Assembly: GCA_001643675.2 (NCBI GenBank) | Contig: LSRY02000011.1 | Span: forward strand, 124,001 to 188,000 | Reading direction: 5' to 3' | DNA from: Monocercomonoides exilis PA203 | Taxonomy: Eukaryota > Protista > Preaxostyla | DNA length: 64,000 bases | In this document: positions 4,209-53,810 of the stretch, piece after piece | How positions within the stretch are numbered: position 1 is the stretch's first letter | Layout of the letters: every line of letters starts with the position of its first letter | The notes under the pieces: generated by a model | Database searches by the model: none | What the model was told of the DNA's origin: nothing | The model's input: only the letters and a program-made list of their open reading frames with translations | Translations under genes and position numbers: made by a program

Positions 4209-5564
4209 ATGTCTCTTCAAGCCACAGATGAACTTATATGGACATGCATTAAGCATGGATTTTGTTCATCCAGAGCAAAGTTTTTGATTTTGATTATTTT
4301 ATTATTTACATTTTTTCCCCAGAACAATTACTCAAAATTTTTGTAGGAATCCAATGAATGTTTCCGGGTTATGCAAGAGAAGTTCTTGCCCACTTGCAAA
4401 TGCATCTTATGCAACAGTTGTTGATAGAAAAGGTTAATATTCTTGATAATTTGTTTGCTGTTAAACAAAAAGTAATTATTTGAAACTTTTTGTGTAGGAG
4501 AGATATACTTAATGATAAAAACAGCTGAAAGAATGCAGTTTCCGGCAAAACTTTGGGAAAAAATAAAACTTCCAAATAATAAACGAGAAGCCAAACATAT
4601 CATAAAAGACAGATTGCAATTCTTTTCCACTTTTATGCAAAGAAGTGTTCTACGTAGATATAGACGCATTCTTCAAATTCATGGGAGAATTCGTCGTCTT
4701 CGTCATAGGATAAAGTATGAAAGCATCAATTTTTATTCTTAATAAATATTGTTGTTATGTAGGCCTCATGAGGTTGGCATCAAAGTGAATGTTGAACGAA
4801 AAATGCGATTGAAGGAAATAAGAGCAGAGCGTGCAGCGGACATTGAAGAGACATTGAAGAAAACTCTTTTGAAGCGATTATCAACTGTTTGATATTATTC
4901 AAATTTTAAATTTTGAAATGAATATTTTTTGAATCATTAACAGTATCAAGAAGAAGGTGTATTTAATTTCCCACAAAAGGCATTTGAAAAGGCTTTGGAA
5001 GAAAAGGGGGCCGAATCGGATGAGATTGATGAAGGGGAATCGGATGAAGAAGAAGAAGAAGAAGAGGAAGAACTGAGCGAAGAAGAGGCAAGAAGCAAGA
5101 AGAGAGGTAAGGCGGTGAAGCCCAGATTGATGTATGAGATGGAGATGGAGGATGCCCATGCTGCTCCAATGATGCTTTCTCATTCTGCTGCTTCATCTGC
5201 ATCATCAAAATCTTCTTCTTCGGTTAAAAGGAAAGAAGCAGATGATGAAGATGATGAAATGTATGTTGAAGACGAGGATGAGGATGATGACGATGAAGAT
5301 CCGAGCGATATTGAGGAAAGTGATAGTTATGAAGAGCTAAGCGATGAGGATGATCAGGATTTAAGTGGTTTAGATAGTATCAACAATGAAGACGATGAAG
5401 ACGAAGAAGACGAAGAAGATGAAGAAGACGAAGGCAATGATAGCGAAGAAAGAAAAGATCATAAAAAAGCTCCTAAATTAAGGAAGAGTGACAAAAATCA
5501 AATCACTCTTCGAAAGACCCAGAAAAAGAAACTTCATTCTGGAGATATTGAAGATATTGTTTAA
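4209..5564 (+). CDS. MAK16: MAK16 60S ribosome biogenesis protein (5 exons)
   Basis: Spliced reading [24 protein letters not shown] / ...[27 protein letters not shown] / [25 protein letters not shown]..., then an acidic C-terminal tail. Four GT-AG introns keep the frame. Confidence 0.92.
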
Positions 5565-5811
5565 AAAAATCAAAAATACAAAAATTCACTTCATCACTTC
5601 AACAAGTAATTTAAAAAGTATGGATTATGTTATGCATTTTTATTTATCATTTTTAAAGAATTTTATTTTTTGAATGTTAAAAAAATGAGGGGTCTGCTGT
5701 ATTAGGTAATTTAAAGATCAGACTTTTTGTTTGTGGTGCTATTTCTTTTCATACAGGCAATTTCAACGTAAATATCATTTTTCTGAATTGATATATTTTT
5801 ATTTTAGCAGC

Positions 5812-9266: not shown

Positions 9267-17173
<7,907 letters not shown>

Positions 17174-19012: not shown

Positions 19013-22000
19013 TCAAGAGTGCTGAGTAATAAATGATACAAGGGTATTGAAAAGTGCTTTATATAGAACTGGAAGAGTGAGTGTTGTTTGGTTAATTTGA
19101 GAAGGGGTATTTCTTTGTTTTGTCACACATGAAGATGCTATCAAAAGAGGAGGAAGAACGGAAGGAACAGGTGACTCAAGTGAGGATAAATCAGAATGAA
19201 AAGACGGAGACGGTAAGCTGAATGTAGGCATTCGACTTGTTGCCTTGAGTTTTCTTGAAGAAGGAGGAATTGACGATGAAGATTGAGGAGAAGACGATTG
19301 ATCTCGTGAAGGTGATTGCTGATGGAATGAATGTAATGTCACATCTGACTCAGCTGATGATCCATTGGATTGTGCAAGTGGTGGAATTTCATCTTTTACT
19401 TCATTCTCATTTTCAACAAGAGTAAATTGTGCATCGCTTAATGAAGATTCAGTTGTTGGCGACTGTTGACGAGAAATGGTTCCTTCAAATTCAGTGGAAG
19501 AGACAATTTCTTCGGAAAAAGTTGAAGATTCCGCAAACGGAATATCTTCAAAAGCATCGAATTCATTATCCATTTTGAAAATATCTGAATCCTTTCTTTT
19601 ATTTTGCTTCTTTTGATCGAGATGTGCTCCTTCACTATCATCGTCAATTAACTCCACATCATTTTCAATGTCTTGTGAATTGCATTCATATGAATCACTT
19701 TTGGTAGGATATTGCAGAAAATTAAGGAACGATAGAAGAGGTTTTGTTGTAGCCATCTTTGCAGATGAGATAAGAGAGAGACAAATAGACAATGAATACG
19801 GAAGAGATGCAGCAAACAGCTCATCTATCAGTGCAATTAACTGTCTTGTATCTTCATCGAATACGCTGTTCATAATCGACTCCTTCATCCCAGAAGGATT
19901 AGATCGCACAAATATTGATGCTTTTGGAAGTGTTTTATCGAAAGAATCGTCAATACGAGGAGAAGCACTCGAATGCGAGTTCGAATGATTTCCAAAAACA
20001 GGCGAAGAAGAAGGGGAACGCAAGTCTTGCAATGGTGGCTCAGCAGAATGTCCATACTGCTGCTGCTTGCATTTCCCAAGAAGAGAAGAATTAGGAATTT
20101 CATCAAATGATGGAAGAGAAAGAGAAGGCGAGTGCTTTCCAGAAATAAGTGAAGATGCATCATTAGCTTGCAAATGAGGAGATGCAGCAGATGACAAAAT
20201 CTTTGTTGGAGTCAGAGAATTCAGATAAGCGTCAGGAGAAAGAATCTTATTCGGACTTGCAGTCAAATTTGCTCTATCCTCACACACATTCGAACGAAAT
20301 GGCGAGAGTGGGATGCCTGCAAACTTCACAAGTGGAATTGCTCTATAGAATCCGCCAAGCTGTGCCAGAGGCTTGAACAAATTAGAAGAAAGAGAAGAAA
20401 CATCATAAGTGAGTGGATCACTTGTAAAGAACACAGTTGATGCTGTGATGGAGTGATGGACTATTCGAGGAGTGCATCTGTAGTGCAAATGCAAGAGTGC
20501 TGCACACAAATCAAAAGCTATTTTTATAATAACTATCGGAGAAATAAGAGGGCAGAGATACTCTTCCCCAAAGAATGAGTGAATCTTTTTCTCATCATCA
20601 ACAAAATCAAAAAGAGATGTTGGAGAGTTCTGAGGTTGTTTGCTTTGAGAGTTCAATTCATTTTGCAATTCCTTTGATGTTCCTTTGCTCAGAGATGGAA
20701 AGGCGGAAGAGGAAGGCAGCACACGAGGAAGGACAGATGAAGAATGAGCAAGTGGATGGGGAAGAACCATTTGTGCAATTGGCTGATGCTGAAGCATTAC
20801 ATCTCGAGTTGCTGTTAAATACCATTTCTTAATATTTGAAGTTTTCGTTCTTCTCATCTGTGTCAAAGAAGAAACCAGTGATTGACAAGAAATTAAAGAT
20901 GGAGACATTTTCATTACAACAGAAGGAATAACGCACAATTTGTGGCAACGAACAATACACGGATGGCTGATCATTGACTGCAAATATGAAGCCATCAGAA
21001 AATCTTTTAATGTTATAACATCGAAAGAAGATGACCAAGGGGGAGTTGAGATGGCTGTTAAATCAATCCGACGCGTCAAAAGCGACAAAAAGTGAGAAAG
21101 AAAACAGGAAGAGGATGATTTATCACAACCAGAGTTCGATGAAGATTGCGAAAAATCTGCAGAGCTGATTGACAGAGAATGAGGCACATCTGCAGAGAGT
21201 TGAGCTTGATGAAACAATCCTTCTTGATCTTCTTCAACATTTTTACTGTTATATTCGAAACAATTTTCAACAGAGCTTGAAGGAAATTGAGTCGAAAGGC
21301 TTGACTCACTTTGTGATTTGATTTTAACAGAGCTGTGAATGATCAACAATGGGGTCAGTACTTCTTTCAATTCAAATGCATTTGAAGGTGACTGAAACAA
21401 TGAGAAGTTATAAAACTCACCTGAAAACCATTTTACGAAAGAAGAAAAGAAAGAATTCAAATACGATGAAGATGACCTGGAAACGGATGATCTGCCAATC
21501 GAAAACAAATTATATGAAGATGGAACATTTATGGGCATCTCGCTTTCATTTGGTGCAGAGGAAGTAATCACACTAAGTGGATTTTGAGAGAGTTCAACGT
21601 CCTGCAGAGGTGTGAGGAGTGGAGGCAAAGACATTGAAGTAGAGACAGGCTTGAGAGCACTCGGCTGAGAAATTGAAACAGATAGATCTGTTTCTGACTC
21701 TGACTCTTCCACAGACTTTATCGCTTTTCTAACAGACGAACTTCGATTTAATTCTACATTCACTCGCTTTTCAGATGTTGTTCTGTGTCTTTTTGTTTGA
21801 TGCTTGATTCGCTTGCTGTTTGAACAGACAAATGATGCGTCAAACAATTTCCACCAGGAAAGAAGGGCAGAAAGATCAATAAAGGATTCATATGTGATTG
21901 GAGGAGACAATTCTGGGACAGTGCAGAAGAGCAGTTGTTTTAGATATTCTTCATCATTCGCATCAAATTTGCCATCGCCTTTTCTTCCTTTGCAAGCTGC

Positions 22001-25000
22001 ATTTTCAGCTTGTTTGAGCACATCTTCCTTAATATTTTCAGCTGCTAAATCTTCATGGCCATCAGTTATCATTCCTTCGTCTTCTTCAGAAGTTGAACTC
22101 TCATCTTCATTTCTAAGAAGTGCCGATTCACATTTTTCTCTCACAAACCGCATCACATCAACAGGAGGAGCAGCTGCAACGGAAGTGGATATGTCGTTGA
22201 AGTACTCACGTGAGGAATATTTCATAATGGAAGATATTTGAGTGTTAATCATAAAATGACACGCTTCCCAATCGTCCTGGCTGTGCTTGAAAGAAAATGA
22301 AGATGAATCAGAAACAACATCCTCAACGAAACGTGAATGCTCGGCAAATGAATCACAATGCTTTGAAGACTGACATAGTTTCATTAAATCGCAAATCTTC
22401 TTTTCTTCATCTTTAGAAACAATTTGAGAGTGAATAGGAACAAATGCTGAGCAAGTTATTGAATCTAATACATCAGATTTATTGAGATTTTTGAATTCAT
22501 CTTCTTTTTTCTTTGCAGGAATATGAAGCGGAGGAAGGCTCTCAACGACTGAATATTCAGATATATTTCCACCTCCATAACAAGAACTAGTCATTGTTTG
22601 TATCATCCTTCTAACAGAGTTGCAAAGAACGATAAACAACATTTTTCCCAAATGTGGATTGTGTGATGCGACTACAACCTTCACCCAGCTTGTTGCTGAA
22701 TCTGGTTTTGATGAATTGCGACCATTTGGCCCAGTTTCAATAAGAAATGTGAGATCGTGATGAAGGCAAAGCGACTGAAATATTGTCGAAGGAGTTGTTA
22801 CTTCAAAAGCCTTCTTCTTCATTTCTGAGTCAGATGATGTTAATACTGAAGGCCTAACACAATCTATTGCTTTTGAATGATCGATTTGAGTGGCTGAGTT
22901 CGCTTCACTGTCTGTGAAAGACTTGCGAAGTGAACTGTCGTTGCGATTCACTGAAGAAAGATGTGTCATCTTTCTCTTTGTTGATTCAGGAGCACAAAAT
23001 GATTCAAAATTGCAAATATTTCCCTTCACAATTTCAAGCATTTTATCTGCAGTTGGGAAATATCTAATATAATCCTTTTCTTCTTCTGTCAAAGATGATT
23101 CTTGAGGTAAAGATGTAGAAATCAAAGAATCAATGTGCTCCTTTTGTTCATTCCCAAATATGTTCCATTTCTTCTTTTTCTTCTTTTCTTTATCTTTATC
23201 CTTATCTTTCTTTTTCTTCTTTTCTTTTTCTTTTTCTTTTTTCTTCAATTTCTTTTCCTGTTTCATAGCTTTCTTTTCTTTCTTCTTTTGAATAGACTCA
23301 ATTGCTAATTTCTCGCAATGTTCACCTAAAAGCATTTCTAATTGAGAAGGAAGCAAAACCTCTGCAAACGTCTTGAATCCTCCAATAACGCCACAGCTAT
23401 CAAACTTCTTTTCTGCTGAAGATGTCCAAGGAACAATAAAAGAAGCAACAGGAAAGTTGGACGAATGAGTTGGATGATCAACTGACTGAGATGGGCAGCT
23501 TTTGCTTCCAGTATCCAAATCACTGTTGGAACAAAGTGAATCTTGATGCTCTTTTGTGCTGTTATTTAGCTGCTCTTCGGTGATTCTCACAAAAGATGTA
23601 AGAGATGGAAGGAGAATTGAGACAAGAGCAGAAACATTTGCAGAAGTTACAAACAGTCGAATATGCTGTGCGATTCCAAGAGAAAAAGAAAGATCACTCA
23701 AAGAATCCGATTTTAACAATTCAGATGAAGATGGATTTGTGTTTTGTGGTGCATTAAACGAAGAAAGAGAACTATCAAGAGTTGATGAAAGATTTCTGTT
23801 GGATGATTTACAACGCCATTCAATTGGAGAAAGTTTTAATGATGGCCACAAATTGTTGTATTCCACACCAGTTGGCTTAATTCCAAGATGGACATTCATC
23901 CAAAGATGCATAGTTGATGGAGAAAGTGAGAAGGCAGGTAAATTGAATGAAGAAATAGACGGAACATGAGTTGTTGCACAAAATTGAGACGATACATAAG
24001 AACGCTCTGTTGGTTCTTGATCCACATTTGAAATTGATATTTGTTTCTTCTTTTCTTCTTGTGCTTCCAATGGATCAATCCATTTAACTTTCCCAAAAAT
24101 TCGGCATTCAACAAACTGCTTCAAGCACATCAAAGAAGTCATAACAGCTGATTGTCGCTTTGACAATGAAGTTCCTGTGCATATAAGAGAAAGACATGGA
24201 TTAACATTTGAATCATTTAATGCTATAGAAGTGGCAAATGAAGAAGCTGCAAGATTTCGCGATTGCTGAAGAGAGTGATTTTCTTGATTGCTTCGTTTGC
24301 CTGAATGGCGACGAGAACGCTGCTGAGAAACAGCTGGAACGTTGCATGATGCATCGAAGGTTGTTAGCACCGAATAGACCCAAAGAGCATCTGACATAAT
24401 AAGGGAATCGTTATTTCTATATAATGGGAGAATAAAAGAAGAAGGTGAACAAGAATTAGAGTTCATATCTTGTTGTGTTTCATTGTCATGGCAAGTAGCT
24501 AAGATTGTTTCTCTATCGTCAGTTTCATTTTTCCGCATCAACGAGTAGCATGGTAATCGCATGAATATACCCCATCTCTGCATGATTTTCAAGAAAGAGA
24601 ATAAGTCCTTTCCATTCAATCCAATGGCAAGTGCATCATTTTCCAGTGCTTTTCTTTCAAAGCAAATTTGTCCTGCTCTCAACAGCAATGGTAGGAAATG
24701 AGTTCGTGCATTGACTGCAATGGCAGATTTTTCTTTCTTCTGAGACAAACATAATTCAACAATTTGCTTCATCTCTCCAGTGTGCAGCAGATGCTCTTCT
24801 TCGTTTTCATTGCTGTCTCCGAATGTATTTGTCTTTGAATCGTTTGAATTTGGCAAATGAGATTTCATCCAAAACTCATTCCACAAAGAAAGATGAGAAG
24901 ACTGAATAAACTGTGAAGTAGCAAGAATTGAAAAAGAAGAAAGAATCCGTCTGAGCGATGATAAAAGAGGAAGAGCACCGAAAAGCTGTGACTTTGAGGA

Positions 25001-28000
25001 TGAAGTTGCAGAAGAAGAAGATGATGATTGAATTTGTGCAGAACGTTGATGCGTTGCAGGAAGCGTTGCATCTCGCATATGAAAAGGAGTTGGTGTTGAT
25101 GCATCTGATGGCAACAACGTTGGTCCAATCTTTTTTGTATGGATCACAAACCAAAACGGATGATGGAAGCTATTTTGTTCTTTTTCAGAGCACAAAAAGC
25201 TAGATGATGGTGACAAGCCAGCGCCTGGCGTCAAAAAGGCCATTTGAGGAAGCGGTGGATATTCATTGCTGCTTTGTTGGCTGCGTCCCTTTGTGAGGCT
25301 GCCAGAAAGAGTTACCTGCTTCTCGCTGAAGTCATCAAACATTGAGACAAGTTGAAGTCCCAAGTTATTCTTTATTTCTGTTTCTGCATCCAAAATATCT
25401 GAAGAAGACGGCGAAGATGATGACTCGACTATATGGACTTGTTTAGACATCGAATCGTAAGCATCGTGAGTTATCAGAAGAGGTGGTGGACCTGCAACAA
25501 ATTGAAGAAAGCCTTCGGAACAAGCAATTGGTCTTTGATTCTTATGTGAGTGGCTGAGTTTCTGCTCTTCTTTGTGTAACTCAGTTGAAGGAAAGCCGTA
25601 AAAAGAATGAGACACATTTGTTCCTGCAAAGAAACCTTGAAAGAGAGGAGGGCAATTTGCCAGCTTGACTAATCTCTGCTCTGATAATAAGTGCTTTGCT
25701 ATGCTTTCTTTTCTATCTTTTGCGATAGTGTTGCACCGCTTGTCAATTGCTTGGCACATACTTGCATGATGCACAAACAAATGTGGATTCAAAGATGAAG
25801 AAAGATCAACAAGAGGTAGAGCAACGTTGCGAAATAGAAAAGTTGTTGATAAAGAAGGCAAGAGTGATTCTGTGGTGATTGAACCAATTGAATGTCGATG
25901 TAAATGAGACTTGATTTTACTTTTTGAGTCTGCTTTTTGCACTGTGGATGGTGCATCAGATTCTAAATGATGTTTTTGAGTTTCCTTCCGCAAAAATGGA
26001 GTGTGTGTTGATTCCAAAGCATTTGGCGAAAAAGTGTCGGTTCTTTGCTGATTCTGCTGTTGCAATGCCGATTGCTGTTTTCTTGATGATACCGTGCCCT
26101 GTGAACGCAGAGTGTCTGGTGAAGACATGAGAGAGAAAGATGGGTCGAAGGGAAGCAATGATTGGTTGTCCAACAAAGAAGTTGAAGGAACACTAATAAG
26201 ACTGGTCTTTTGATTCATTCCAGAAACAGAAGAGCATTTCAGCACTTCAGAAGGTGGAAGGCCGTGAAGTTGAGACACAGCAGAGGCAGACGTGATTGGA
26301 GACAATCCATTCAGATCGTGCAATTCTTCAACGCTCATTTTGAGTGGAGAAAATGAAGATGAGTCAAAAAAGTCGAAGAATTGGTCATTATCTTCAGTCA
26401 GGTTATTATTTTTGCAATCTGTATTATTTACGCAATTAACGTTCTTCGAATCTGCTTTCAAAGAAGTATTGTCAGATGCAGATTGTGACAAAGATGAATA
26501 ACATTTGCTCTTTTCCACTTCTTCATCTGCCAAAACTTTTTGCAACGTCTGCTGTTGCTGTTCTGATAAGTTTTCACTTCCATTTGAATGAAACAGCATC
26601 AATTCACCTTCGTTGCACATTGTTCGAGTAAATCGAGCTAAACACTCAACAACTGCATCAGTCAGCTGTGCCACTTGTTCTCCAATCGAAGCCTTGATCT
26701 TTTCTTCTTTGCTTATATTCTTTTGATTAGCTTTGTCTTCGCTTCTTTTTGAAAGCATATGATTTTGTGGCTTGCAAGAATCAGACAAAAACAATGGGGA
26801 TGGAGCCACTGGCTTTTGAACAGGTTTGAAAGGAGGTTTCGGAGATGGAATTTTTGCTGAATCAGAGCGATTTTTTGTGGTTGATAGAGATACCAATATT
26901 TCATCTGCTTTAACTTCTACCTCTTCAGAATCTTCCTCTTCTTCATATTCAAAATCATATTCACTTCCTTCTTCATATTCTTCTTCATTTTCATCATAAT
27001 CTTGAAGCTCAATTTTCATTCCCAATGTTTTTCTCGTTGTGTTTGAACTTGATGGAGTTGTCCTTGAACATTGCTTTATCTCCTCTAATTCTGAACGTTT
27101 TTCAGATCCTTTGATTGATTTATCACTCCAAATTTTTGATTCTTTTCTGTTTGAAGAACTTTCGCTTTCATTGATTGCAGCATCCACCTCTTCCTCTTTG
27201 CTTTCTTCATATCCCTCATCTTCATTTCTCATATTTCGATAGTCCAATACACTTCCTTTCTCTTGTTCTTTATATGCCTCTTGCACATAATCATCAATAT
27301 CATCAATGCTCAATGATGACACTGATCCGTCATCATCTGCTCCATCCACACCATCGATTTCCTCTGAGTTCTCAGAATCATCGCTTTGTGGTTCTTTCAA
27401 TGAATAGATAGAAACAGCTCTGTTTTTGGATGTTTTTGATGATTTGACTGAAGATACTGAAGAAACCCAAAATGATTTGGCAGCCGAAGTCAAAAATGAA
27501 TCTTCTTTCTCAGATTTTGTCTCAGAAAGACTACTTTTATTATTACAAGCATTTTTCTGATCTTTTTCAATGATGCTTTTTTCGTTTTCAGCATTTTTAT
27601 TTGAACTTAAATCCTTGTCATTGCTCAATTCCTTATAATCCTTAACAGCTGATAAATTAATTGACTGCTGGGCAAGTGATGCTAAAGTTGCATATTCACT
27701 TGGTTCAGCAGCCTTTTGAAGAGGCGAAGAACGAAGAGCTTCTTTCAAAAGAGCTTCGTTCCGTTTTTTGTTCAGTTTTTTAGCAACTTTTTGGCGAAGT
27801 TGCTGGATTGGCACATTCTTCTTTGCGGGAATGACAAGATCATCAACAGAAGCCTCAGCCAAAACAGCTGGATCGATAAAAGTGTTGATGACGGTGTACA
27901 CAATGAATCGTAAGCGAAAACTGCGTGCGATGAAGTTCAAGTCATTCAGAGTGGAATACAAAGCATTTACGAAAGAAGAAGGCAGAACTGTTTGAGAAAG

Positions 28001-31000
28001 AGCAGATGCTGAAGAAGAACAGGAGAACGCAAAAGAGATTGCTTGAAGAGGCAGCGAGAATGACAGAAGGATTGGCGTTGGAAAAGTCACAATCGCAGGC
28101 AAAGAAGATGGTTGTTGTGAATCTGAGTGGAGAAACGAGCGAAATGAGAGGCAAAGCCAGAACAGCCTTGTGAGTGTGGATGAAGGGGAGAGGTGAAGCA
28201 GCTGAGTGTGCTGCCCTTTTAGCGGAGTGTCAAATAAAATAAACGATTCAGCAGAAGATGGATGCACAGGAGAGGAAAAATGATCGATTGAAGCATTTTC
28301 CTTGGAGTTGCTTTGAGAAGAAAGTGAATTGCTGTTTTTGGTTGGGGCGATGTGGGAGAAAGCTTCGTTGAATGAAGAATGCGACATTTCGTTGAACAGA
28401 ACCGAAGAAAGTTGAGAAGGGTAACGAGAAAATGGAGGTGTTTCAGCTGTTTCTGTGCTGCAGCTGGAGCCTTCGTTTGAAATGGCAAGGATGCGCAAAA
28501 ATGAGAGCGGAAAAGGAGTGATCGGGAGCGGATTGTCAATGGCATCAGACAATGGCTCGTCTTTCTTCTTCACCGCAGCAGAAGTGCTCTGAATGGCAAG
28601 TGATTCACTTTCTTCCTTTTCGTTTCCTTTATCTTTTGGATTTTCGAATTCAGTTTTTTCATTAGAAAAAGTTGAATGCTTTGTTGATTTTGAAGTTCTT
28701 CTCTTTTCCCATTCAGAACAATCAGCTGATTCTAACATCTTCCAATGCGATGACTTTTCAGTCATTTTTTGCAGTTGAACAGTGAGTGACGAAATATAAC
28801 TGTCAAATGCTGATTTCTGCTCTGCTCGAAGAATAAAAGAAGGAGGCGTTCTCAGCTTTTGCAGGAGCGAGACAAAACTATTTGAAGCTATCAAGGGTGT
28901 TGAGGCAGAAGTGGAAGAAGAAGATGATGATGAAGATGCAGACGAAGACGATCGAGAGTTTTCAGATATTTTCGGAGCATTCATAAATAGCTGTGGTGAG
29001 AAAAGAACTTCGCCGGTTGGCTGATAAATAAGAAGGTTACTCACAGAAGAAGAAGACGAAGAAAGAGAACGAGACGAAGCAGAAGTTAATTCAGGAGGAG
29101 GCGGAAGCGAAGACGATATGTTCCGATGGGATATCAAGCGGATGGCAGAAGTGAAAGAGCGAGGAAGAGAGAATGAGTAAAGAGCAGGCGATATAACATG
29201 CGCAAATGGAGGATCAGATGGGAAAGAGCTGTGCTGAGGCAGAGGAGGATACAAAAGAGGCGGAAGGTACTTCAGAGTGAACGGAGATTTGATGCTGAAA
29301 GGAGAAGAAACGAAAGAAGGAGGCGAAGTGTCCAGAAAGCTGGAGTGTGCAAGTTGAACAGAAGAAGAAGACTTTTTGTCGCTTCTAGTCGTTTCTCGAC
29401 TGTTTTGCTTCTTTTGCTGAGGAGACGGTGAATAAACAGGAGAAATCTGTTTGGATGGAGCAGGAAGTGTGTTGCCTGACGACTGAGACTTCTTTGTTGT
29501 TGTTGAAGTTGTCTTCGTCTTTGAAGGTGAAGGCAAAGTTGAGGAAACAAATGTTGATGTTCCTGTTTTCAAAGCATTTGATGGACTTGTAGAAGCAGAT
29601 GAAGGCAATGCATCCTGATTTTTCATTTCTTTTCTCTTTCTCAGATGCTCCATTTTCATTGTGAGTGACTCGATCTGTTTTGTCTGTTTGATGACATGGC
29701 TGACTTCTGAGTCAATTTGATCTTTCTGTGCTTTGGCATTCATTCTGTCTTTGATCAACGAGATTTCTGAGTTGATAAGCGAATAAGGAGAAAAGTCTGT
29801 GCAGCGAGAAACAGCAGAAAGGCCACGGGAAGAAGGAGAAGATGAAAACAAAGAAGACGAAAATAAAGATGAACTCACATTAGACTGAGATGAAGAACCA
29901 GAATGGGCTGAAAGCAAAGTTGGAGAAGACAAAAATAAAGAAAGAGAAGTGAGTTTGTGCAGAAGTTGTGGTGATAAGGTTATGAAAGTGTTTCCAGAAA
30001 TGTTTAAAAACTTAAGATTGCGCAACAAAGATAACTGAAGAGGAAGTTGAGTCAAAGAATTGTTTGACAAATCAAGATACTCCAATGTGTGTGAAATGCC
30101 GCTGGAAAATGAAGAAGAGGAATGGAATATAGCACTTGGCAAATGGTTGAGTGAACATCCTTTCAGAGAAAGATGAGTCAGGTTTAATGAAGACAACACA
30201 GAAAAAGGAGAAAATGATAAGCATTCACAGTGTTTACATGAATTGCTTTGAACAGTTGTAGAAGTTGTTTGTGATTGTGGAACTGCAGAAGCAAAAGGAA
30301 CAACCTCAGAAGATTGAGCAGAATGAGGAGAAAGCAGAGAATATGATTGTTTTGGTTCAAATGAACATTCGTCCCACTGAAAGTTTTGCAAATTGCTTGA
30401 GATTTGATAGTCATGCAATGAAGCTGTATCCAACATAGCAAAAATGTGCAGCGATGGAAGGGAAGATTGAGTGATGTCAAACTGTGGAATGAAAGAATTG
30501 CTAAGATTGATCGAAAAGCAGCTGCTCAGACAACTTTTGATGGATGTAAATGTCGATGGAGTGATGCACTTGATGCTCTGAGAAAGCTGAGGAGGAATAA
30601 AAGTGGGGAATATATTTGTGCTTGAAGGGATATTGAGAGTATCAGAAGAAAAAGGAGAAAGTGGATTATCATCAAAAGCAGAAGAGGAAGAAGTGGAAGA
30701 CAAAGAAGAAACAGTTTCATTCTGTTTTGGGAGAAGCAATTCTGTTGAGATCAATTGCGATGCAATTCTTCTCGTGCCATCCAAAAACATCGGAAGCTGC
30801 TTCACAAAATCGAGTGAATGAAGAATGAGCGGAAGAGAACGAAGCACAATTTGTGATGCTGGATTGCTTGTATTCAACACAACATCAAGACCAGAGCTCA
30901 GAAATGGAACGAATCTTTGAAGCAGCAAAAGTGATGCTTTTTGAGATGAATTCGAGCAATCTGATGAACTGCAATGCTTTTCATCAAATGAATCGTCGGA

Positions 31001-34000
31001 AGAGTGAGCAGTTTCATTTTCTTTGCCAATTTGCTTCGCCATCTTTGATGAGTTATTCTGACTGTCTTTCAATGAACAATCAATTTTATCTGGCAAGAAA
31101 AGTTCGAAATGCTTCATCAATCTCTCTCTTTTGCCATCGGTATTGTCTTCCCCATCTTCCATGAACACTTTCTTCACAGCCAAATACTCAGCCACTTTCA
31201 TCATCACCATTCCCATCCGCACAAACAGAGACGGATCCACCTCAAACATCTGCCCCAGTGCATTCACGTCTTCCTTCGCGCGGATTCGCTCCACGCCGCC
31301 TTTTGCAGCCATCGTCCGCATCAGAATCATCGCTGCCTCTTCGTCGTCTTCTTCCCGCAACTTCTGCCTCTCAATCAGCAGCTGCTTCCACTCTGCACTT
31401 TGGTTCTCGTCCTTCAGAATTTCTGAGAAGAACAGAGCAGCTTCAGATAGAGAGGGAAGACAGAACAATGAAAAGGAGGATTTTGAATGAGAATATTGAG
31501 AAGGTCGAGAAGAAGGCGAAGATGAGGTATCTAAATATTCATTATTTAAACATTGCTCATTTTGTTCAAGTTTTAATTTTTCCGATTCAGTATAATTTTC
31601 AGGATGATTTGATGAAGTTGTATCTTTCTTCTCCAACAAAGCATCGTTATCTTCCGATTCTTCAATTGTCCTATGATTTTCTTGCTTTTCTTTTGCTTTC
31701 CTCGTTTCCATCACTTCTGCCATTGCCTTGTTTCCCCATTCTTCCATTACACACATCAAATGCTCAATCCCTTCGCTTTCACAAATTGCCTCTCCAATTC
31801 TGAATTGGTCTCCACCCGACCTCAACAGCCGCAGCACATGAAACACAGCAAACACATGTTGATACACAGAAATGGGTCTTTTTGTGGGAAGAGCAAAAAG
31901 AGAAGAGGCTGAACTGGAAGTGACAGGAAGAGATGACGAAATAATGGCAGCTTCAGCTGATAGAGGATCAGAAAATGCATCTTCGTCGCTGTAATATCCA
32001 GCCCATTCAACTGAATCTTCATCGACTTCTTCCTCGTCATTCTTTCCTTTTGTTTCATCACTCTCTTCTTTTGTGTTGTTATTTTTCAAGTCATTTTGTC
32101 CATCCACATAAATTGGCACTTTCATCAGATCTTCAATGAGCGAATGGTCTTCTGATATTTTCTTCTGCACTGCTGGGCAGCTCAGCACAGCATTCAGCAC
32201 AGCCGACGGGAGCGTAGCCATCAACGCAACAGCACTCGCATTTGGAAGAGGTTTGCTCTGCAGAAACAGACGCGTCGCTTTTCTGATGTTGTTGCAGCTG
32301 ACAATCACAGAAGGAATGATGTGTGAGTCTGCGCTGACTTCTGCTGATGTCACAATGTCAGTCACTTTCTGAGACAAACAGGCATTCGAGTTGTCTGAAG
32401 CATCGCCAGATGGAAAAGTTCGAAGAGCATTCATCACAATGCATTCAGCCTTCAACATCATACGAATGTCCATGCTTCTCACACGAGAATATATCAACCC
32501 ATCTATTTCATCTATTCTTTCTTGTTCTTCTTCATCTCTCATCTCCTTTGTCACTTTTATGGTATCATCCTTTTCTTCCTCGTGATGCAAATGCTTTTCC
32601 TCCTCAACCTTTGTAGCTGTCTCTTCATTTGTTGTTTTGATTTGCTCTTCAGCCTGCAACGCAGCAGCAGCATCGTTGACCATGTCTGATGGAATGTCGT
32701 ATCCTCCAAACAGCAACAAAGACACAACACAAAGTGAACCAGTTGACAATGCTCTTATCAATGGATGGCTGCTTTGTGGAGAGAAAGGCAGGGAAAGAAG
32801 AGGGTCAATGAGAAGCTGCTTGGACTGAAGTGAAGAGCGTGGAGGAGGAGAGGAGAAGAGAGAATACGAAGACATCGGAGAAAGAGGAAGAGGCGGAGAA
32901 AATCGGATTGAACGGGAAGGTCGCTGTGGAGAGACAGAACGAGCTGAAGAAGATGCTTGCTGAGAAGAATAGATTGAGGGGGAGGACACAGCTGTTGTGG
33001 CAGAACGAGGCAGAACAGAACGTGGCTGTGTTTGAGTTGCTGATTGTTGTGGAGGCTTGCTACGAAGCTGAGCTGTGGAAAATGAGGAGAGGGAATACGA
33101 ACTGAATGAAGATCGCCTCTGGGATTCAGGCTGTGACAAGTTGAGGATGATGGAGAGAGGCTGAGAGAGAAGGGCTGCAAGTGGAATGAAAGGCAGGAAG
33201 AACGAGCGAGTAACGATTGAATGTTTGAAATCGCTCTGAATGCGTCGCTGCTGAAGTGATTGTTGAGAAGAGGCATGCGGAGAAGGCTGAGTGTTGCCAT
33301 GAAGAGTGCGAGAGGAAGAGGAAGAGGAAGAGGAAGAAGAAGAGGAGGAGGAGGAGGACTGATTGGAAGTGAGACGAGATGAATCAGTTGAGCCATTCAA
33401 ATAGCAAGATGACGATGCAACAACAGAAGAGAATGCGAATGGAACTAATCCGTTTGGAGTTGATGATTGAGGTGAAGAAGATGGTGATGGTGATGCATTC
33501 ATTGATGAAGAAGGAGAAGACGAAGATTTGAGAGAAGAATTAAAACCAGAATGAGGTGGATCAGACGCTTTGTTGTTGTTGTTGTTGTTTGAAGATGATT
33601 CAGAGAGAATTGGGTCAACATGAAATGAGTGTGAGAAAAGGAGGGCAACAAGAGGAAGGCAGAGTGACTGGATGGCTGCGATGAGAGGCGTGAAATGAGC
33701 AGACAGCGCAAAAGTGGATGTTCTCTGAGACAGCGACGGCCGAAGAGAATGGTCTGAAATGGGAATCAGAGAAAAAGAGGTTTCTTCGCTGTGATTGGAA
33801 TGAGGGTGTTCTGAAAGATGGAGAGATGAAGTGCCAGAGGAATTAAGAGGAGGAGAGGAAGGCGAATGTGATGTATGCTCTGAATGAATTGTGTTTGCAG
33901 CAGAAGGAGAGGAAGGAGAAGAAGAATGTGAATGCGGAAGAGGAGAAGATGAGGGCGAAATGGACAAGTCGGTTGGAGTGGAAGCTGATGCCAGATGCAG

Positions 34001-36331
34001 CGAGGATGAGATGCTGGCTGTTTGTGTGTGTTTCTGGATGAGCTGTGCCCACGACGTGATCTTCGGCTGGTTGATGGTCAGTCCACGTGGCAGCGGGGCG
34101 CTGAAGGAAAGCGAAGTGCAGCTGTTTGGGTCGCAGCCAGCATCGAGCAGAAGCTGCACAACACCCAAACTACCTCCTCGTGCAGCACAGATCAGCGGCG
34201 TGAGGCCTCTTTCGTCGGATGAGTGGGGATCAGCGCCGTGCAGCAGAAGAGTGTGCACAACACGCGCATGCCCCGCAATGCACGCCAACTGCAGCGCTGT
34301 CCATTTGTGTGCAGAAACAATGCTGACACACGCGCCTCGCAGCAGAATCTCATCGACTGCATCGAGCGAGTTGGCAATGCACGCACACATCAGCGGAGTC
34401 ACCCCATCTGCATCGGTTGACAGCGCATCGATTGACATTCCATTCTCCAGAAAGAAGCGAATGAGAGAAGTGTTGTTCTCTTCTGCAGCATTGTGCAGCA
34501 TAATCCCCTTGTTTCGCTTCTCGCATCCAAACATCTCCAGTCTCGACAAGTGTGTGCAGTGTTTTGCCAGCGCTCGAATAGACTCGTCTCCAATCTGCTC
34601 GCAGTCTTCGAGCGAAAGCGACTCCAACTGCGGACAGCGCAATGCCAGTGCCACAATTGAGGCATCAGTCAGCGCTGAGCAGCTTTTCAGAGTCAGCTTC
34701 TGCAGATTAGCGCAGGCAGCAGCCAGACGAATGATCAAATCGTCTGTGACACTGGTGCAGTAAGCGAGATTAACAGAGGTCAGATTCAATTGATGGTCAG
34801 GTGAAAAAAGTTGAAGTGATTCCATAATTTCTGGTTCAGTAAAATCGCAAGAAATAATAGAAACAGATTCAACAGAGGATGGAGAAGAAGAAGCAGAAGA
34901 AGTTTCGCTTGACGCTGAAGTGAGCAATGAAGACTGATGCAGCATCGTCAAAGAAGGAGTGCACACCGGAGAAGGAAGCGGTGGTGACTGAGGCAGCGGA
35001 GTCATCGTGCGGCTGGCCAAATGAGCACTGCCAGGCTCGCTGAGTGTCTGTCGTGTTGGAGATTCCACATCGTGTGGAGGAGAGGCTGATGCAGAGAATG
35101 ACTGCATTTTCAGATTTTCTGTCAGATCCAGGCAGCGCAAGTCCAAAGTGCTGAGAAATGGAAGGCACTCGCAAACAGACGACAGTCCCCTCGCGGTCAT
35201 TCGCGTGCACCATCCGATTTTCAACTCTCTCAACTTGAGCAATCCAAACGGCGCATCTTGCTCTGATAAAGCTGAACCAAAATTACCATTCACAGAAGAC
35301 GATATAGAATGAGAACCAACTTGCTCCGGAGAAGAACATAATGTCGGAGAAGACATATTTTCTGTGGGTTCATCTGCCGTTGCACACTGAAACTGGGGCA
35401 AGTGGGGTGAAAGAGGTGGAGAAGATGATAGCTGATGTGTCACATTTAAAGATGAATTTCCATGAGTCAAATATTCATTGTTCACTCGATCCAACAATGA
35501 ACGCGAAAGTTTGCTTTTCTGTCCACAAATAAAGAACAGTGTATTGTCTGTTAGCGATGTGCAACCAATTAAATTGAGCTTTTTAATGTTCCTGCAGTGA
35601 ACACATAATGGAACTATTGAATAATCTCGAATTTTGGAACATCCGCGCAACGACAGATCCTCTAAACATATCAAATTGCGACTTATATCAAATATTGCTT
35701 TGTCTGTTAGTTCGGAAGCTCCATATAGTTTTAATGAAGTCAATTGCTTGCAATGTTGAGAAATTGCAGTGATTGCAGAATCATCCAATGAATTTCGAAG
35801 AAGCGAAAGATCTAAAATTTTCAGCGAAGTAAACATAGGTCCTTTAAATATGCTAAATCCTGCAGAAGAGATGTTTGTTTGACGAAGAGATAATGACTGA
35901 AGATGTTGAAGATTTCCGAGAATCTTGATTAAACCGTTTCCAATTGGACAAAGATTTAAGGAAACTGTTTGAAGATTTGGGTTTCGTAAAATAAGTTCTG
36001 CAGCTATTCCATCATCAACTTCTTCGAGTCCATCAAGAAAAATTGATGTCAATTTTGAAAAATGGTCAAAAGATTCTGAATAATTCGATAGATGCAAGTG
36101 GATATTATGAGAAAGATTTAACGAATGAATGTTTTCAGTTTGGCGGCATAGGCGAAAGGTTTTTTCTTCATTAAGTTTCAAAAGAGAAAAATCAAGTATT
36201 GTTGTGTAATTTTGAAGCGCCAAATGAAATCGTGAAGAAACAAGAGATAACGGCAATCTAGATGAAATTCCGCATCGAGAAAGAATATCTCCAAGAAGTG
36301 GAAGCGGAAGAAAATTGAGATTTGCCGCCAT
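19013..36331 (-). CDS. Giant intronless F-box/LRR-ankyrin-LRR protein with degenerate ROC-COR and pseudokinase (Roco-like), 5,772 aa
   Basis: F-box LNFLPLPLLGDILSRC...LSLVSSRF; FBXL-type LRRs (LTSLKLYGASELTD, LEDLSLRGCSKIRD); ankyrins (DGVTPLMCAC, WTALQLAC, RGLTPLICAARGG); typical LRR (LEYLDLSNNSLTQLP); C-terminal kinase-like HPCIVR and KIAFDLCAALLHLH...IVHHSI. Confidence 0.85.
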   Translation of the reverse strand: MAANLNFLPLPLLGDILSRCGISSRLPLSLVSSRFHLALQNYTTILDFSLLKLNEEKTFRLCRQTENIHSLNLSHNIHLHLSNYSESFDHFSKLTSIFLDGLEEVDDGIAAELILRNPNLQTVSLNLCPIGNGLIKILGNLQHLQSLSLRQTNISSAGFSIFKGPMFTSLKILDLSLLRNSLDDSAITAISQHCKQLTSLKLYGASELTDKAIFDISRNLICLEDLSLRGCSKIRDYSIVPLCVHCRNIKKLNLIGCTSLTDNTLFFICGQKSKLSRSLLDRVNNEYLTHGNSSLNVTHQLSSSPPLSPHLPQFQCATADEPTENMSSPTLCSSPEQVGSHSISSSVNGNFGSALSEQDAPFGLLKLRELKIGWCTRMTARGLSSVCECLPFLSTLDLRCLDLTENLKMQSFSASASPPHDVESPTRQTLSEPGSAHLASRTMTPLPQSPPLPSPVCTPSLTMLHQSSLLTSASSETSSASSSPSSVESVSIISCDFTEPEIMESLQLFSPDHQLNLTSVNLAYCTSVTDDLIIRLAAACANLQKLTLKSCSALTDASIVALALRCPQLESLSLEDCEQIGDESIRALAKHCTHLSRLEMFGCEKRNKGIMLHNAAEENNTSLIRFFLENGMSIDALSTDADGVTPLMCACIANSLDAVDEILLRGACVSIVSAHKWTALQLACIAGHARVVHTLLLHGADPHSSDERGLTPLICAARGGSLGVVQLLLDAGCDPNSCTSLSFSAPLPRGLTINQPKITSWAQLIQKHTQTASISSSLHLASASTPTDLSISPSSSPLPHSHSSSPSSPSAANTIHSEHTSHSPSSPPLNSSGTSSLHLSEHPHSNHSEETSFSLIPISDHSLRPSLSQRTSTFALSAHFTPLIAAIQSLCLPLVALLFSHSFHVDPILSESSSNNNNNNKASDPPHSGFNSSLKSSSSPSSSMNASPSPSSSPQSSTPNGLVPFAFSSVVASSSCYLNGSTDSSRLTSNQSSSSSSSSSSSSSSSSRTLHGNTQPSPHASSQQSLQQRRIQSDFKHSIVTRSFFLPFIPLAALLSQPLSIILNLSQPESQRRSSFSSYSLSSFSTAQLRSKPPQQSATQTQPRSVLPRSATTAVSSPSIYSSQQASSSARSVSPQRPSRSIRFSPPLPLSPMSSYSLFSSPPPRSSLQSKQLLIDPLLSLPFSPQSSHPLIRALSTGSLCVVSLLLFGGYDIPSDMVNDAAAALQAEEQIKTTNEETATKVEEEKHLHHEEEKDDTIKVTKEMRDEEEQERIDEIDGLIYSRVRSMDIRMMLKAECIVMNALRTFPSGDASDNSNACLSQKVTDIVTSAEVSADSHIIPSVIVSCNNIRKATRLFLQSKPLPNASAVALMATLPSAVLNAVLSCPAVQKKISEDHSLIEDLMKVPIYVDGQNDLKNNNTKEESDETKGKNDEEEVDEDSVEWAGYYSDEDAFSDPLSAEAAIISSSLPVTSSSASSLFALPTKRPISVYQHVFAVFHVLRLLRSGGDQFRIGEAICESEGIEHLMCVMEEWGNKAMAEVMETRKAKEKQENHRTIEESEDNDALLEKKDTTSSNHPENYTESEKLKLEQNEQCLNNEYLDTSSSPSSRPSQYSHSKSSFSLFCLPSLSEAALFFSEILKDENQSAEWKQLLIERQKLREEDDEEAAMILMRTMAAKGGVERIRAKEDVNALGQMFEVDPSLFVRMGMVMMKVAEYLAVKKVFMEDGEDNTDGKRERLMKHFELFLPDKIDCSLKDSQNNSSKMAKQIGKENETAHSSDDSFDEKHCSSSDCSNSSQKASLLLLQRFVPFLSSGLDVVLNTSNPASQIVLRSLPLILHSLDFVKQLPMFLDGTRRIASQLISTELLLPKQNETVSSLSSTSSSSAFDDNPLSPFSSDTLNIPSSTNIFPTFIPPQLSQSIKCITPSTFTSIKSCLSSCFSINLSNSFIPQFDITQSSLPSLHIFAMLDTASLHDYQISSNLQNFQWDECSFEPKQSYSLLSPHSAQSSEVVPFASAVPQSQTTSTTVQSNSCKHCECLSFSPFSVLSSLNLTHLSLKGCSLNHLPSAIFHSSSSFSSGISHTLEYLDLSNNSLTQLPLQLSLLRNLKFLNISGNTFITLSPQLLHKLTSLSLFLSSPTLLSAHSGSSSQSNVSSSLFSSSLFSSSPSSRGLSAVSRCTDFSPYSLINSEISLIKDRMNAKAQKDQIDSEVSHVIKQTKQIESLTMKMEHLRKRKEMKNQDALPSSASTSPSNALKTGTSTFVSSTLPSPSKTKTTSTTTKKSQSSGNTLPAPSKQISPVYSPSPQQKKQNSRETTRSDKKSSSSVQLAHSSFLDTSPPSFVSSPFSIKSPFTLKYLPPLLYPPLPQHSSFPSDPPFAHVISPALYSFSLPRSFTSAIRLISHRNISSSLPPPPELTSASSRSLSSSSSSVSNLLIYQPTGEVLFSPQLFMNAPKISENSRSSSSASSSSSSSSTSASTPLIASNSFVSLLQKLRTPPSFILRAEQKSAFDSYISSLTVQLQKMTEKSSHWKMLESADCSEWEKRRTSKSTKHSTFSNEKTEFENPKDKGNEKEESESLAIQSTSAAVKKKDEPLSDAIDNPLPITPFPLSFLRILAISNEGSSCSTETAETPPFSRYPSQLSSVLFNEMSHSSFNEAFSHIAPTKNSNSLSSQSNSKENASIDHFSSPVHPSSAESFILFDTPLKGQHTQLLHLSPSSTLTRLFWLCLSFRSFLHSDSQQPSSLPAIVTFPTPILLSFSLPLQAISFAFSCSSSASALSQTVLPSSFVNALYSTLNDLNFIARSFRLRFIVYTVINTFIDPAVLAEASVDDLVIPAKKNVPIQQLRQKVAKKLNKKRNEALLKEALRSSPLQKAAEPSEYATLASLAQQSINLSAVKDYKELSNDKDLSSNKNAENEKSIIEKDQKNACNNKSSLSETKSEKEDSFLTSAAKSFWVSSVSSVKSSKTSKNRAVSIYSLKEPQSDDSENSEEIDGVDGADDDGSVSSLSIDDIDDYVQEAYKEQEKGSVLDYRNMRNEDEGYEESKEEEVDAAINESESSSNRKESKIWSDKSIKGSEKRSELEEIKQCSRTTPSSSNTTRKTLGMKIELQDYDENEEEYEEGSEYDFEYEEEEDSEEVEVKADEILVSLSTTKNRSDSAKIPSPKPPFKPVQKPVAPSPLFLSDSCKPQNHMLSKRSEDKANQKNISKEEKIKASIGEQVAQLTDAVVECLARFTRTMCNEGELMLFHSNGSENLSEQQQQTLQKVLADEEVEKSKCYSSLSQSASDNTSLKADSKNVNCVNNTDCKNNNLTEDNDQFFDFFDSSSFSPLKMSVEELHDLNGLSPITSASAVSQLHGLPPSEVLKCSSVSGMNQKTSLISVPSTSLLDNQSLLPFDPSFSLMSSPDTLRSQGTVSSRKQQSALQQQNQQRTDTFSPNALESTHTPFLRKETQKHHLESDAPSTVQKADSKSKIKSHLHRHSIGSITTESLLPSLSTTFLFRNVALPLVDLSSSLNPHLFVHHASMCQAIDKRCNTIAKDRKESIAKHLLSEQRLVKLANCPPLFQGFFAGTNVSHSFYGFPSTELHKEEQKLSHSHKNQRPIACSEGFLQFVAGPPPLLITHDAYDSMSKQVHIVESSSSPSSSDILDAETEIKNNLGLQLVSMFDDFSEKQVTLSGSLTKGRSQQSSNEYPPLPQMAFLTPGAGLSPSSSFLCSEKEQNSFHHPFWFVIHTKKIGPTLLPSDASTPTPFHMRDATLPATHQRSAQIQSSSSSSATSSSKSQLFGALPLLSSLRRILSSFSILATSQFIQSSHLSLWNEFWMKSHLPNSNDSKTNTFGDSNENEEEHLLHTGEMKQIVELCLSQKKEKSAIAVNARTHFLPLLLRAGQICFERKALENDALAIGLNGKDLFSFLKIMQRWGIFMRLPCYSLMRKNETDDRETILATCHDNETQQDMNSNSCSPSSFILPLYRNNDSLIMSDALWVYSVLTTFDASCNVPAVSQQRSRRHSGKRSNQENHSLQQSRNLAASSFATSIALNDSNVNPCLSLICTGTSLSKRQSAVMTSLMCLKQFVECRIFGKVKWIDPLEAQEEKKKQISISNVDQEPTERSYVSSQFCATTHVPSISSFNLPAFSLSPSTMHLWMNVHLGIKPTGVEYNNLWPSLKLSPIEWRCKSSNRNLSSTLDSSLSSFNAPQNTNPSSSELLKSDSLSDLSFSLGIAQHIRLFVTSANVSALVSILLPSLTSFVRITEEQLNNSTKEHQDSLCSNSDLDTGSKSCPSQSVDHPTHSSNFPVASFIVPWTSSAEKKFDSCGVIGGFKTFAEVLLPSQLEMLLGEHCEKLAIESIQKKKEKKAMKQEKKLKKKEKEKEKKKKKDKDKDKEKKKKKKWNIFGNEQKEHIDSLISTSLPQESSLTEEEKDYIRYFPTADKMLEIVKGNICNFESFCAPESTKRKMTHLSSVNRNDSSLRKSFTDSEANSATQIDHSKAIDCVRPSVLTSSDSEMKKKAFEVTTPSTIFQSLCLHHDLTFLIETGPNGRNSSKPDSATSWVKVVVASHNPHLGKMLFIVLCNSVRRMIQTMTSSCYGGGNISEYSVVESLPPLHIPAKKKEDEFKNLNKSDVLDSITCSAFVPIHSQIVSKDEEKKICDLMKLCQSSKHCDSFAEHSRFVEDVVSDSSSFSFKHSQDDWEACHFMINTQISSIMKYSSREYFNDISTSVAAAPPVDVMRFVREKCESALLRNEDESSTSEEDEGMITDGHEDLAAENIKEDVLKQAENAACKGRKGDGKFDANDEEYLKQLLFCTVPELSPPITYESFIDLSALLSWWKLFDASFVCSNSKRIKHQTKRHRTTSEKRVNVELNRSSSVRKAIKSVEESESETDLSVSISQPSALKPVSTSMSLPPLLTPLQDVELSQNPLSVITSSAPNESEMPINVPSSYNLFSIGRSSVSRSSSSYLNSFFSSFVKWFSGEFYNFSLFQSPSNAFELKEVLTPLLIIHSSVKIKSQSESSLSTQFPSSSVENCFEYNSKNVEEDQEGLFHQAQLSADVPHSLSISSADFSQSSSNSGCDKSSSSCFLSHFLSLLTRRIDLTAISTPPWSSSFDVITLKDFLMASYLQSMISHPCIVRCHKLCVIPSVVMKMSPSLISCQSLVSSLTQMRRTKTSNIKKWYLTATRDVMLQHQPIAQMVLPHPLAHSSSVLPRVLPSSSAFPSLSKGTSKELQNELNSQSKQPQNSPTSLFDFVDDEKKIHSFFGEEYLCPLISPIVIIKIAFDLCAALLHLHYRCTPRIVHHSITASTVFFTSDPLTYDVSSLSSNLFKPLAQLGGFYRAIPLVKFAGIPLSPFRSNVCEDRANLTASPNKILSPDAYLNSLTPTKILSSAASPHLQANDASSLISGKHSPSLSLPSFDEIPNSSLLGKCKQQQYGHSAEPPLQDLRSPSSSPVFGNHSNSHSSASPRIDDSFDKTLPKASIFVRSNPSGMKESIMNSVFDEDTRQLIALIDELFAASLPYSLSICLSLISSAKMATTKPLLSFLNFLQYPTKSDSYECNSQDIENDVELIDDDSEGAHLDQKKQNKRKDSDIFKMDNEFDAFEDIPFAESSTFSEEIVSSTEFEGTISRQQSPTTESSLSDAQFTLVENENEVKDEIPPLAQSNGSSAESDVTLHSFHQQSPSRDQSSSPQSSSSIPPSSRKLKATSRMPTFSLPSPSFHSDLSSLESPVPSVLPPLLIASSCVTKQRNTPSQINQTTLTLPVLYKALFNTLVSFITQHS

Positions 36332-36709
36332 TCTGTTTCTCAAAGAGAAAAATTTTTATTGGAAATTAGATCAAGTCTTTCAATAAACACATATGAAACA
36401 AAAGCAATAAACACAATATCATTTCCAAAAATTAAGATTAGCAAATAAACTTTCATTTGCGAAAAATAAAAAAAAAAGACCGCACTCATTTTGAAAATTA
36501 AAAATATAAAAATATTACATAGATAAAACATATGATTTCACGCAAATATAAATATAAATTTATACAACATATGAATAAATTCAAAAATAATCACATTACA
36601 ATAATAATACAATTGATGGATGCCTCAACATTTTAAAATGCAATTCTCGGCATAAAACAAAATAAATACGAAATTTTTGTAACTTTCTCGAAACAATTTC
36701 TCTTTTCTT

Positions 36710-53271: not shown

Positions 53272-53810
53272 GCGTTTTGAAATCTCATCATTATGGAAAC
53301 AGATCAACAAGAAAAAATTGAAATTATTTGTTATTTGCCAAAAAACATAATCTTCACAAAATCAATTTTCTAAAAATTGAAATACAAATGACAAATTCTT
53401 GTCATAATAAAAACAAAATTTATGTAAATTTCACGAAGAGAAAGCAATATGAAGTGTAATAAAACACAAGATAATATCTTCCGACTATTTCTTCATAAGT
53501 TTTTTTTGCTTAAGTACTTGAAATTCCATTTTTTTGTTCTTTGACTTTTGTTTGTGAACACATTGTTCGAATAAAGATAAAAAATAAAAGACTTTTCGAT
53601 TATATGCTCTTATGAGATTCTTTGAAATCAAAATAATAACATTTTCAAACATATTAATACGTTATGATTCTCTTCGAAAATCACAAAATGGAATAATAGA
53701 AAAATTGAAAATATGAAAATGGATGATTTTTCTTAAAAGTTTTTCTTTTTTCGGGATGTTGATGATAAAAAGGGTTTCAACTATTTCTTTAAAAAGAATT
53801 ATCTTCCATA

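Follow-up and report, generated by a model that had tools for sequence, protein, structure and literature searches.

Does the very long open reading frame (ORF) at positions 19013–36331, minus strand, of this stretch of Monocercomonoides exilis PA203 DNA encode a Roco protein, as an earlier reading of the sequence alone had proposed, or a protein of another kind? We refer to the whole stretch of 64,000 nucleotides (contig LSRY02000011.1, positions 124,001 to 188,000) as the window; coordinates are those of the window, residues are those of the encoded protein, and all features of the gene lie on the minus strand. The sequence-only reading saw an F-box fused to a complete but catalytically dead Roco scaffold. 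We find that the gene is one real protein-coding unit with an F-box, leucine-rich repeat (LRR) and ankyrin head and a catalytically dead kinase-like tail. The product is probably a giant FBXL-type F-box protein that acts as a substrate receptor or scaffold of a Skp1-cullin-F-box (SCF) ubiquitin ligase, and it is not demonstrably a Roco protein.

The stop-free frame spans 19013–36343, with its first ATG at 36331, and holds 5,776 codons without a stop, in a window with a G+C content of mostly 25–49%. The coding region itself (19013–36331) is a single ORF of 5,772 codons plus a stop at 19013–19015, with no evident intron, and the ORF scan found no other ORF of more than 290 amino acids in the region of the gene. 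The predicted protein is 18.2% Ser. We used its C-terminal 877 residues for a six-frame search of the M. exilis assembly (82.3 Mb in 101 contigs) and found two further loci, referred to here as the C55 paralogue (C55:345262-360432, 5,055 residues from the first Met) and the C9 paralogue (C9:578901-601004, 7,368 residues). Each is one open frame, the start Met of the 5,772-residue protein lines up with a Met of both in the alignment, and the F-box-like N-terminus and the tail are common to all three. Because both paralogues open with the same F-box and close with the same tail, the head-to-tail fusion is conserved; because three independent copies each carry the head, the islands in unchanged order, and the tail within one frame, the reading as a single protein is strongly supported.

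Comparison with both paralogues by BLASTP gave nine collinear conserved islands with identities of 22–65% (residues 14–418, 517–767, 1339–1849, 2484–2831, 3206–3247, 3502–4330, 4415–4833, 5086–5354, and 5486–5578, numbered 1 to 9 in this order). The filler between them is Ser-rich, of low complexity, and unalignable to the paralogues. A fixed conservation rule placed 1,857 alignment columns in conserved blocks, about one third of the protein length. Islands 4, 6, and 8, used as profiles against the genome, brought up no members beyond the three genes. The genes appear to form a three-gene family, which our searches met in M. exilis only. The C55 paralogue carries the NCBI name "putative F-box and leucine-rich repeat protein 2/20".

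In the head, the F-box (residues ~4–45, 36197–36322) was placed by Pfam and by alignment with the paralogues; the Pfam match at residues 8–38 of this copy scores 15.6 bits (E 0.016) against a cut-off of 20.5, and the homologous stretches pass the cut-off with 25.1 bits in C55 and 21.4 bits in C9. It is followed by a first block of FBXL-type, cysteine-containing LRRs (residues ~46–290, 35462–36196), identified by profile matches to the PDB, a further LRR fragment at residues 364–406, and a second FBXL-type block (residues ~517–612, 34496–34783; 53–65% identity to the paralogues) with Pfam LRR_4 and LRR_6 matches at residues 540–590. About four ankyrin repeats come next (residues ~613–745, 34097–34495; Pfam Ank_2 E 3.3e-25, Ank E 4e-22), with three to four stretches in this block matching Ank or Ank_3. 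When a three-copy profile of residues 1–300 was searched against the PDB, it found FBXL2 (E 1.1e-37), FBXL17 (E 3e-18), TIR1 (E 3e-9), and SKP2 (E 1e-7), with RAD7, KDM2A/B, FBXL5, COI1, and MAX2 among the later matches. A word-index search with residues 1–770 was dominated by giant animal ankyrin proteins and added nothing. On these profiles the head is a predicted FBXL-type F-box/LRR module with ankyrins added.

Further along, a short LRR block of the ordinary L-x-x-L-x-L-x-x-N type occupies residues ~2035–2133 (29933–30229). Pfam LRR_4, LRR_8, and LRR_1 match it weakly in this copy at residues ~2082–2135 (E 1e-4 to 1e-3, under the cut-off), and the canonical LRR passes the cut-off in C55 (37.6 bits) and C9 (27.6 bits). 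Several parts of the sequence-only reading are thereby borne out: the N-terminal F-box with FBXL-type LRRs, the ankyrins it had put at ~34.1–34.5 kb (Ank_2 at 34.10–34.49 kb), the second type of LRR at ~29.9–30.2 kb (29.93–30.23 kb), and the short conserved islands among Ser-rich inserts.

At the other end of the protein, residues 5076–5544 (19700–21106) form a kinase-like domain with two large inserts at about residues 5196–5260 and 5336–5490. No Pfam kinase model matched at E ≤ 1 in any of the three paralogues. A three-sequence profile of this region searched against the PDB, by contrast with Pfam, returned nothing but protein kinases (14 of the 14 matches at E ≤ 10), all falling at helix E and the catalytic loop; the top match was the pseudokinase NFR5 (E 0.0019), followed by SOBIR1, BRI1, BAK1, and MLK4. 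Compared by hhalign with 14 kinases of this genome, the domain reached a Prob of 88–90% (P about 1.5–3e-6) with its inserts kept. Rule-based removal of the inserts raised this to 96.6% (E 6.4e-10), and the reversed query gave 0.1%. The insert-free alignment covers 93 columns (150 at a lower posterior threshold) and spans helix C, strands 4 and 5, helix E, the catalytic loop, the activation segment, and helix F. Because the AlphaFold2 model of the tail was unusable, the kinase fold is argued from sequence profiles only.

The catalytic-loop equivalent lies at residues 5290–5302 (20426–20464). In place of H-R-D-L-K-x-x-N this copy reads H-H-S-I-T-A-S-T, C55 reads H-Q-A-V-F-P-S-S, and C9 reads H-H-A-I-T-P-S-A. 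The Asp of HRD, the catalytic-loop Asn, and the Asp of DFG are missing in all three copies, and no Lys of the VAIK type was found within the kinase-like domain of any copy. Because the equivalents of the catalytic Asp, Asn, and Lys are missing throughout, we classify the domain as a pseudokinase, and the tail is predicted to be a catalytically dead kinase-like domain. Its kinase group could not be assigned; scores against this genome's own kinases were too low to discriminate. Beyond it, residues 5545–5772 (19016–19699) are a low-complexity C-terminal tail, with conservation ending at about residue 5578.

The gene is represented in RNA libraries. We compared 24401–36400 of the gene with four RNA-seq runs of one study, 6 kb by contigs and 6 kb by words. 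Contigs of the four runs tile 24401–30400 without a single mismatch, insertion, deletion, or splice joint, and 88–96% of the sampled words of 30401–36400 were present. Because the contigs in 24401–30400 lack splice joints, the Ser-rich inserts there are present in the RNA libraries and not spliced out. At three short GAA/GAT-rich repeats coding for Glu, Asp, and Lys (25010–25030, 29045–29063, and 29828–29838), the RNA contigs are broken or chimerically joined, and the summed RNA depth jumps about ten-fold; these joins are the only "joints" within 24401–30400. Such repeats are common to many other transcripts, and the joins are an assembly nuisance rather than splicing.

We thus regard the protein as a giant FBXL-type F-box protein with a degenerate kinase-like tail, and its function as probably that of an SCF substrate receptor or scaffold. 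The F-box would dock on Skp1 and so recruit Skp1-cullin; the M. exilis genome contains Skp1 homologues (three matches, best E 1.6e-16). The LRRs, ankyrins, middle islands, and pseudokinase would serve as binding surfaces and not as enzymes. Several points weigh against this reading. The F-box of this copy falls under the Pfam cut-off when taken alone, no Pfam kinase family reaches E ≤ 1 in the protein, and the AlphaFold2 models, made from three-sequence alignments, are unusable, with predicted local distance difference test (pLDDT) values of 33.5 for the tail and 43.6 for island 4. The interaction with Skp1 is a prediction, with Skp1 genes present in the genome. The RNA support consists of assembled contigs of one study, from which a single full-length transcript is not provable and in which some DNA is possible. 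Finally, about 4,300 residues separate the ankyrins from the kinase-like domain (one short canonical LRR, other conserved islands without a recognized fold, and otherwise filler), and this middle is functionally unexplained.

The alternative that survives best is that the F-box does not serve SCF substrate reception at all; it may control the protein's own stability, bind Skp1 outside SCF, or be a relic, and the protein would then be a giant scaffold. There is a reported precedent in Dictyostelium MEKK-alpha, in which an F-box and WD40 repeats stand beside a kinase domain and stability is under the control of ubiquitination (review, PMC5666861). The sub-threshold F-box of this copy and a length about 13 times that of FBXL2 (424 residues) would suit such a role. 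However, the N-terminal block of F-box and LRRs is among the best-kept parts of the three paralogues (42–48% identity), which argues for retained function, and the LRRs match the SCF receptors FBXL2, FBXL17, TIR1, and SKP2 specifically. We therefore consider the alternative unlikely and keep SCF substrate reception or scaffolding as the preferred function.

The Roco interpretation fares somewhat worse. It holds that the middle of the protein is a ROC-COR tandem degraded past profile recognition, which would make the protein an F-box-Roco/LRRK fusion with a dead GTPase and a dead kinase. Its appeal is architectural: ankyrins, a canonical LRR, and a C-terminal kinase domain similar to those of the tyrosine kinase-like (TKL) group follow one another in LRRK order, and both the LRR N-terminal to islands 4 to 7 (residues 2035–2133) and the C-terminal kinase-like domain (residues 5076–5544) that the LRRK subgroup needs are present. 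LRR and kinase domains are both common outside Roco proteins, and membership of the family is defined by a ROC GTPase domain, which is Ras-like, followed by COR. The Pfam Roc and COR-A models gave no match at E ≤ 1 in this protein or in either paralogue, and NCBIfam was equally negative for Roc, COR, and kinases. Of the 83 Roc matches in the genome not one falls in this gene, and a six-frame search of the whole 82-Mb genome for COR-A found no match at E ≤ 1, so that no canonical Roco appears detectable in M. exilis by these models.

Searches with the conserved islands of the middle told the same story. Island 4, mapped at residues 2586–2826 (27854–28576), is 48–49% identical to the paralogues, has an alpha/beta look, and is the only plausible "ROC" candidate. 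An exhaustive HMMER profile search with it against 1.84 billion representative proteins recovered the paralogue only, as did a word-index search, and feature searches of the ESM Atlas with islands 4 and 6 gave no usable match. Profiles of islands 4, 6, and 7 found nothing in the PDB at E ≤ 10; the PDB contains LRRK1/2 and bacterial Roco chains, and the same method did recover kinases for the tail. Island 3 (residues 1339–1849, 30785–32317), defined by collinear BLASTP matches to both paralogues, had no Pfam match and only two weak, unrelated matches in the PDB profile search. Islands 5 (residues 3206–3247, 26591–26716), 6 (residues 3502–4330, 23342–25828), and 7 (residues 4415–4833, 21833–23089) are likewise defined by BLASTP conservation.

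For direct profile comparison we assembled a ROC-COR reference from 24 segments of cyanobacterial Roco genes (Pfam COR-A E ≤ 1e-32), 23 of which have an intact P-loop. Small GTPases of M. exilis served as the positive control and aligned with the ROC part of the reference at an hhalign Prob of 99.3% (97.4% for a single sequence). Islands 3, 4, 6, and 8 reached 0.1–0.4% against the ROC-COR reference, equal to the kinase negative control, and island 4 reached 0.1% against ROC or small GTPases. The three-paralogue alignment was also scanned over its whole length in overlapping windows of 500 columns with a step of 250, and the Prob against small GTPases never exceeded 0.5%.

The window scan against ROC-COR did produce a lone COR hint (Prob 15.5%, P 0.0017, 65 columns), and scans of reversed sequences never gave a P better than 0.27. 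The residues that the hint pairs with the C-terminal half of COR-A are ~3849–3920 (24572–24787), the sole weak COR-A-like stretch of island 6, of helix-wing type; they lie some 1,000 residues downstream of island 4. It depended, however, on the windowing: P rose to 0.24 with a local-pair alignment and to 0.55 after insert removal, when another, incompatible mapping onto COR-A arose. By eye, the same helices can be mapped onto COR-A in two equally plausible ways that exclude each other. With hmmsearch --max for ROC, COR-A, and COR-B, the real sequences scored no better than reversed or locally shuffled decoys. Nor did the order of the blocks carry a signal; the concatenated conserved blocks of islands 4 and 6 against ROC-COR scored 14.8 in their real order, 15.1 ± 0.6 when permuted, and 14.0 when reversed.

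What is left in support of ROC lies at the level of motifs, kept here as leads. Residues 2429–2436 of C55, homologous to residues 2616–2621 here, read A-L-S-D-E-G-K-T after a hydrophobic strand and resemble a Walker A motif. This A-x4-G-K-T is the only Walker-A-like match among the 18.2 thousand residues scanned in the three paralogues, and the other two copies carry Ser-rich insertions at its position. As proof of ROC it was set aside, as about 0.5 such matches would be expected by chance (an estimate from composition). Residues 2697–2708, also following a hydrophobic strand, resemble the switch II motif DTxGQ with two extra residues. The low-confidence AlphaFold model of island 4 shows alternating strands and helices, which is no proof of a fold, and Foldseek with this model found nothing at E ≤ 1e-3; the noise consisted of alpha/beta folds of the P-loop type (best E 0.047, template modelling score about 0.2).

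Weighing these results, we think there is only a small chance that the protein is such a doubly dead F-box-Roco fusion, and a similarly small one that islands 4 and 6 are the last recognizable remains of a ROC-COR tandem. The description of the protein as a complete Roco scaffold is unsupported, and by the profiles available Roco membership is not demonstrable. The sequence-only reading therefore stands in part. Its F-box head and dead kinase tail are retained and its ROC-COR core is not; of the islands said to follow Roco order, only the last is recognizable, as kinase-like, and none as ROC or COR. Its expectation that inserts hide domains from annotation held for the kinase tail, which went from no Pfam match to the 96.6% given above; for ROC-COR, insert removal brought no signal. 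Of the checks it had suggested, profile comparison after insert removal recovered the kinase and no ROC or COR, and AlphaFold with Foldseek gave unusable models and, for island 4, noise only.

It is highly improbable that annotation or assembly produced the frame as an artefact, that it is a pseudogene, or that two neighbouring genes were merged in it. Transcript ends are invisible in the contigs, and the whole gene is not spanned by any one RNA contig, but the frame is free of stops throughout, the head, the tail, and the order of the islands recur in single frames in all three paralogues, and the RNA agrees with the gene over both 6-kb stretches compared.

The surroundings of the gene include other frames of unusual length. 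Three further ORFs of 2,200–3,000 amino acids lie in the window, all on the minus strand. The largest (44380–53310, 2,976 amino acids) has as its sole Pfam match positions 162–257 of PF07714 (E 3.2e-7, residues 2840–2936 of that ORF); the matched part is the C-terminal lobe of the kinase, and the ORF may encode a further giant protein whose kinase domain is truncated or in part concealed. The other two, at 9267–16070 (2,267 amino acids) and 57289–63969 (2,226 amino acids), have no Pfam match at E ≤ 0.001. Giant, Ser-rich, inflated ORFs are common in the genome, where many kinase matches fall in open frames of 4,000–6,900 codons (C52:244016 and C23:935922 are examples), and such inflation seems to be a genome-wide feature. 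Two genes on the plus strand look ordinary: a pyridoxal phosphate-dependent enzyme with an ACT domain, serine/threonine dehydratase-like (1821–3041; PALP E 2.7e-88), and a calcineurin-like metallophosphoesterase (40195–41772; Pfam E 6e-14).

Taken singly, F-box/LRR receptors, ankyrin repeats, and pseudokinases are familiar. For their fusion in one polypeptide of 5,000–7,000 residues, kept here in three paralogues of an amitochondriate protist, we found no description in the literature searched. The locus also illustrates how removing lineage-specific inserts can bring to light a kinase-like domain that Pfam misses, and it offers about 4,000 residues of conserved but unrecognizable sequence as targets for structure work. 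An unsupported Roco/LRRK label is corrected before it can spread into annotation. Should islands 4 and 6 nevertheless be remains of ROC-COR, M. exilis, in whose lineage no canonical Roco is detectable (no COR-A in the genome), would have the first F-box-Roco fusion, an LRRK-like scaffold with both enzymes dead and a connection to the SCF ubiquitin system, and proof of it would link LRRK-type scaffolds to SCF ubiquitination. No F-box-Roco fusion was found in the literature searched, and the M. exilis genome paper makes no mention of Roco, LRRK, F-box, or TKL (PMC6759080).

Four known systems invite comparison. With LRRK and other Roco proteins the protein shares a large multidomain build and the order of ankyrins, canonical LRR, and C-terminal TKL-like kinase. 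It differs in that a ROC-COR tandem is undetectable in it and COR-A is undetectable genome-wide, in the distances of about 1,300 residues from ankyrins to LRR and about 2,900 from LRR to kinase-like domain, and in its F-box/FBXL head and dead kinase.

Pseudokinases with ankyrin repeats, among them integrin-linked kinase and the dead NEKs of Giardia that bear ankyrins, use a dead kinase fold as a scaffold. They combine ankyrins with a dead kinase fold as here, but unlike this protein they are small and have neither F-box nor LRRs. We found no specific sequence relation to them; the best PDB matches of the tail are plant receptor-like kinases and MLK4.

The kinase of MEKK-alpha is active, and MEKK-alpha is far smaller than the 5,772-residue protein. 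It nevertheless sets a precedent, with an F-box and a kinase-type domain carried by the same polypeptide and ubiquitination tied to kinase signalling (PMC5666861). MEKK-alpha is described as a MEK kinase with WD40 repeats, where this protein has LRRs and ankyrins; the two are likened here by domain content.

The closest resemblance in the head is to proteins of the FBXL2/FBXL20 type, in which, as in this protein, an N-terminal F-box is followed by cysteine-containing LRRs. Here the LRR array is interrupted by Ser-rich inserts, and the protein continues for about 5,000 residues past the head, adding to the FBXL2/FBXL20 plan ankyrins, islands of unrecognized fold, a second type of LRR, and a pseudokinase.

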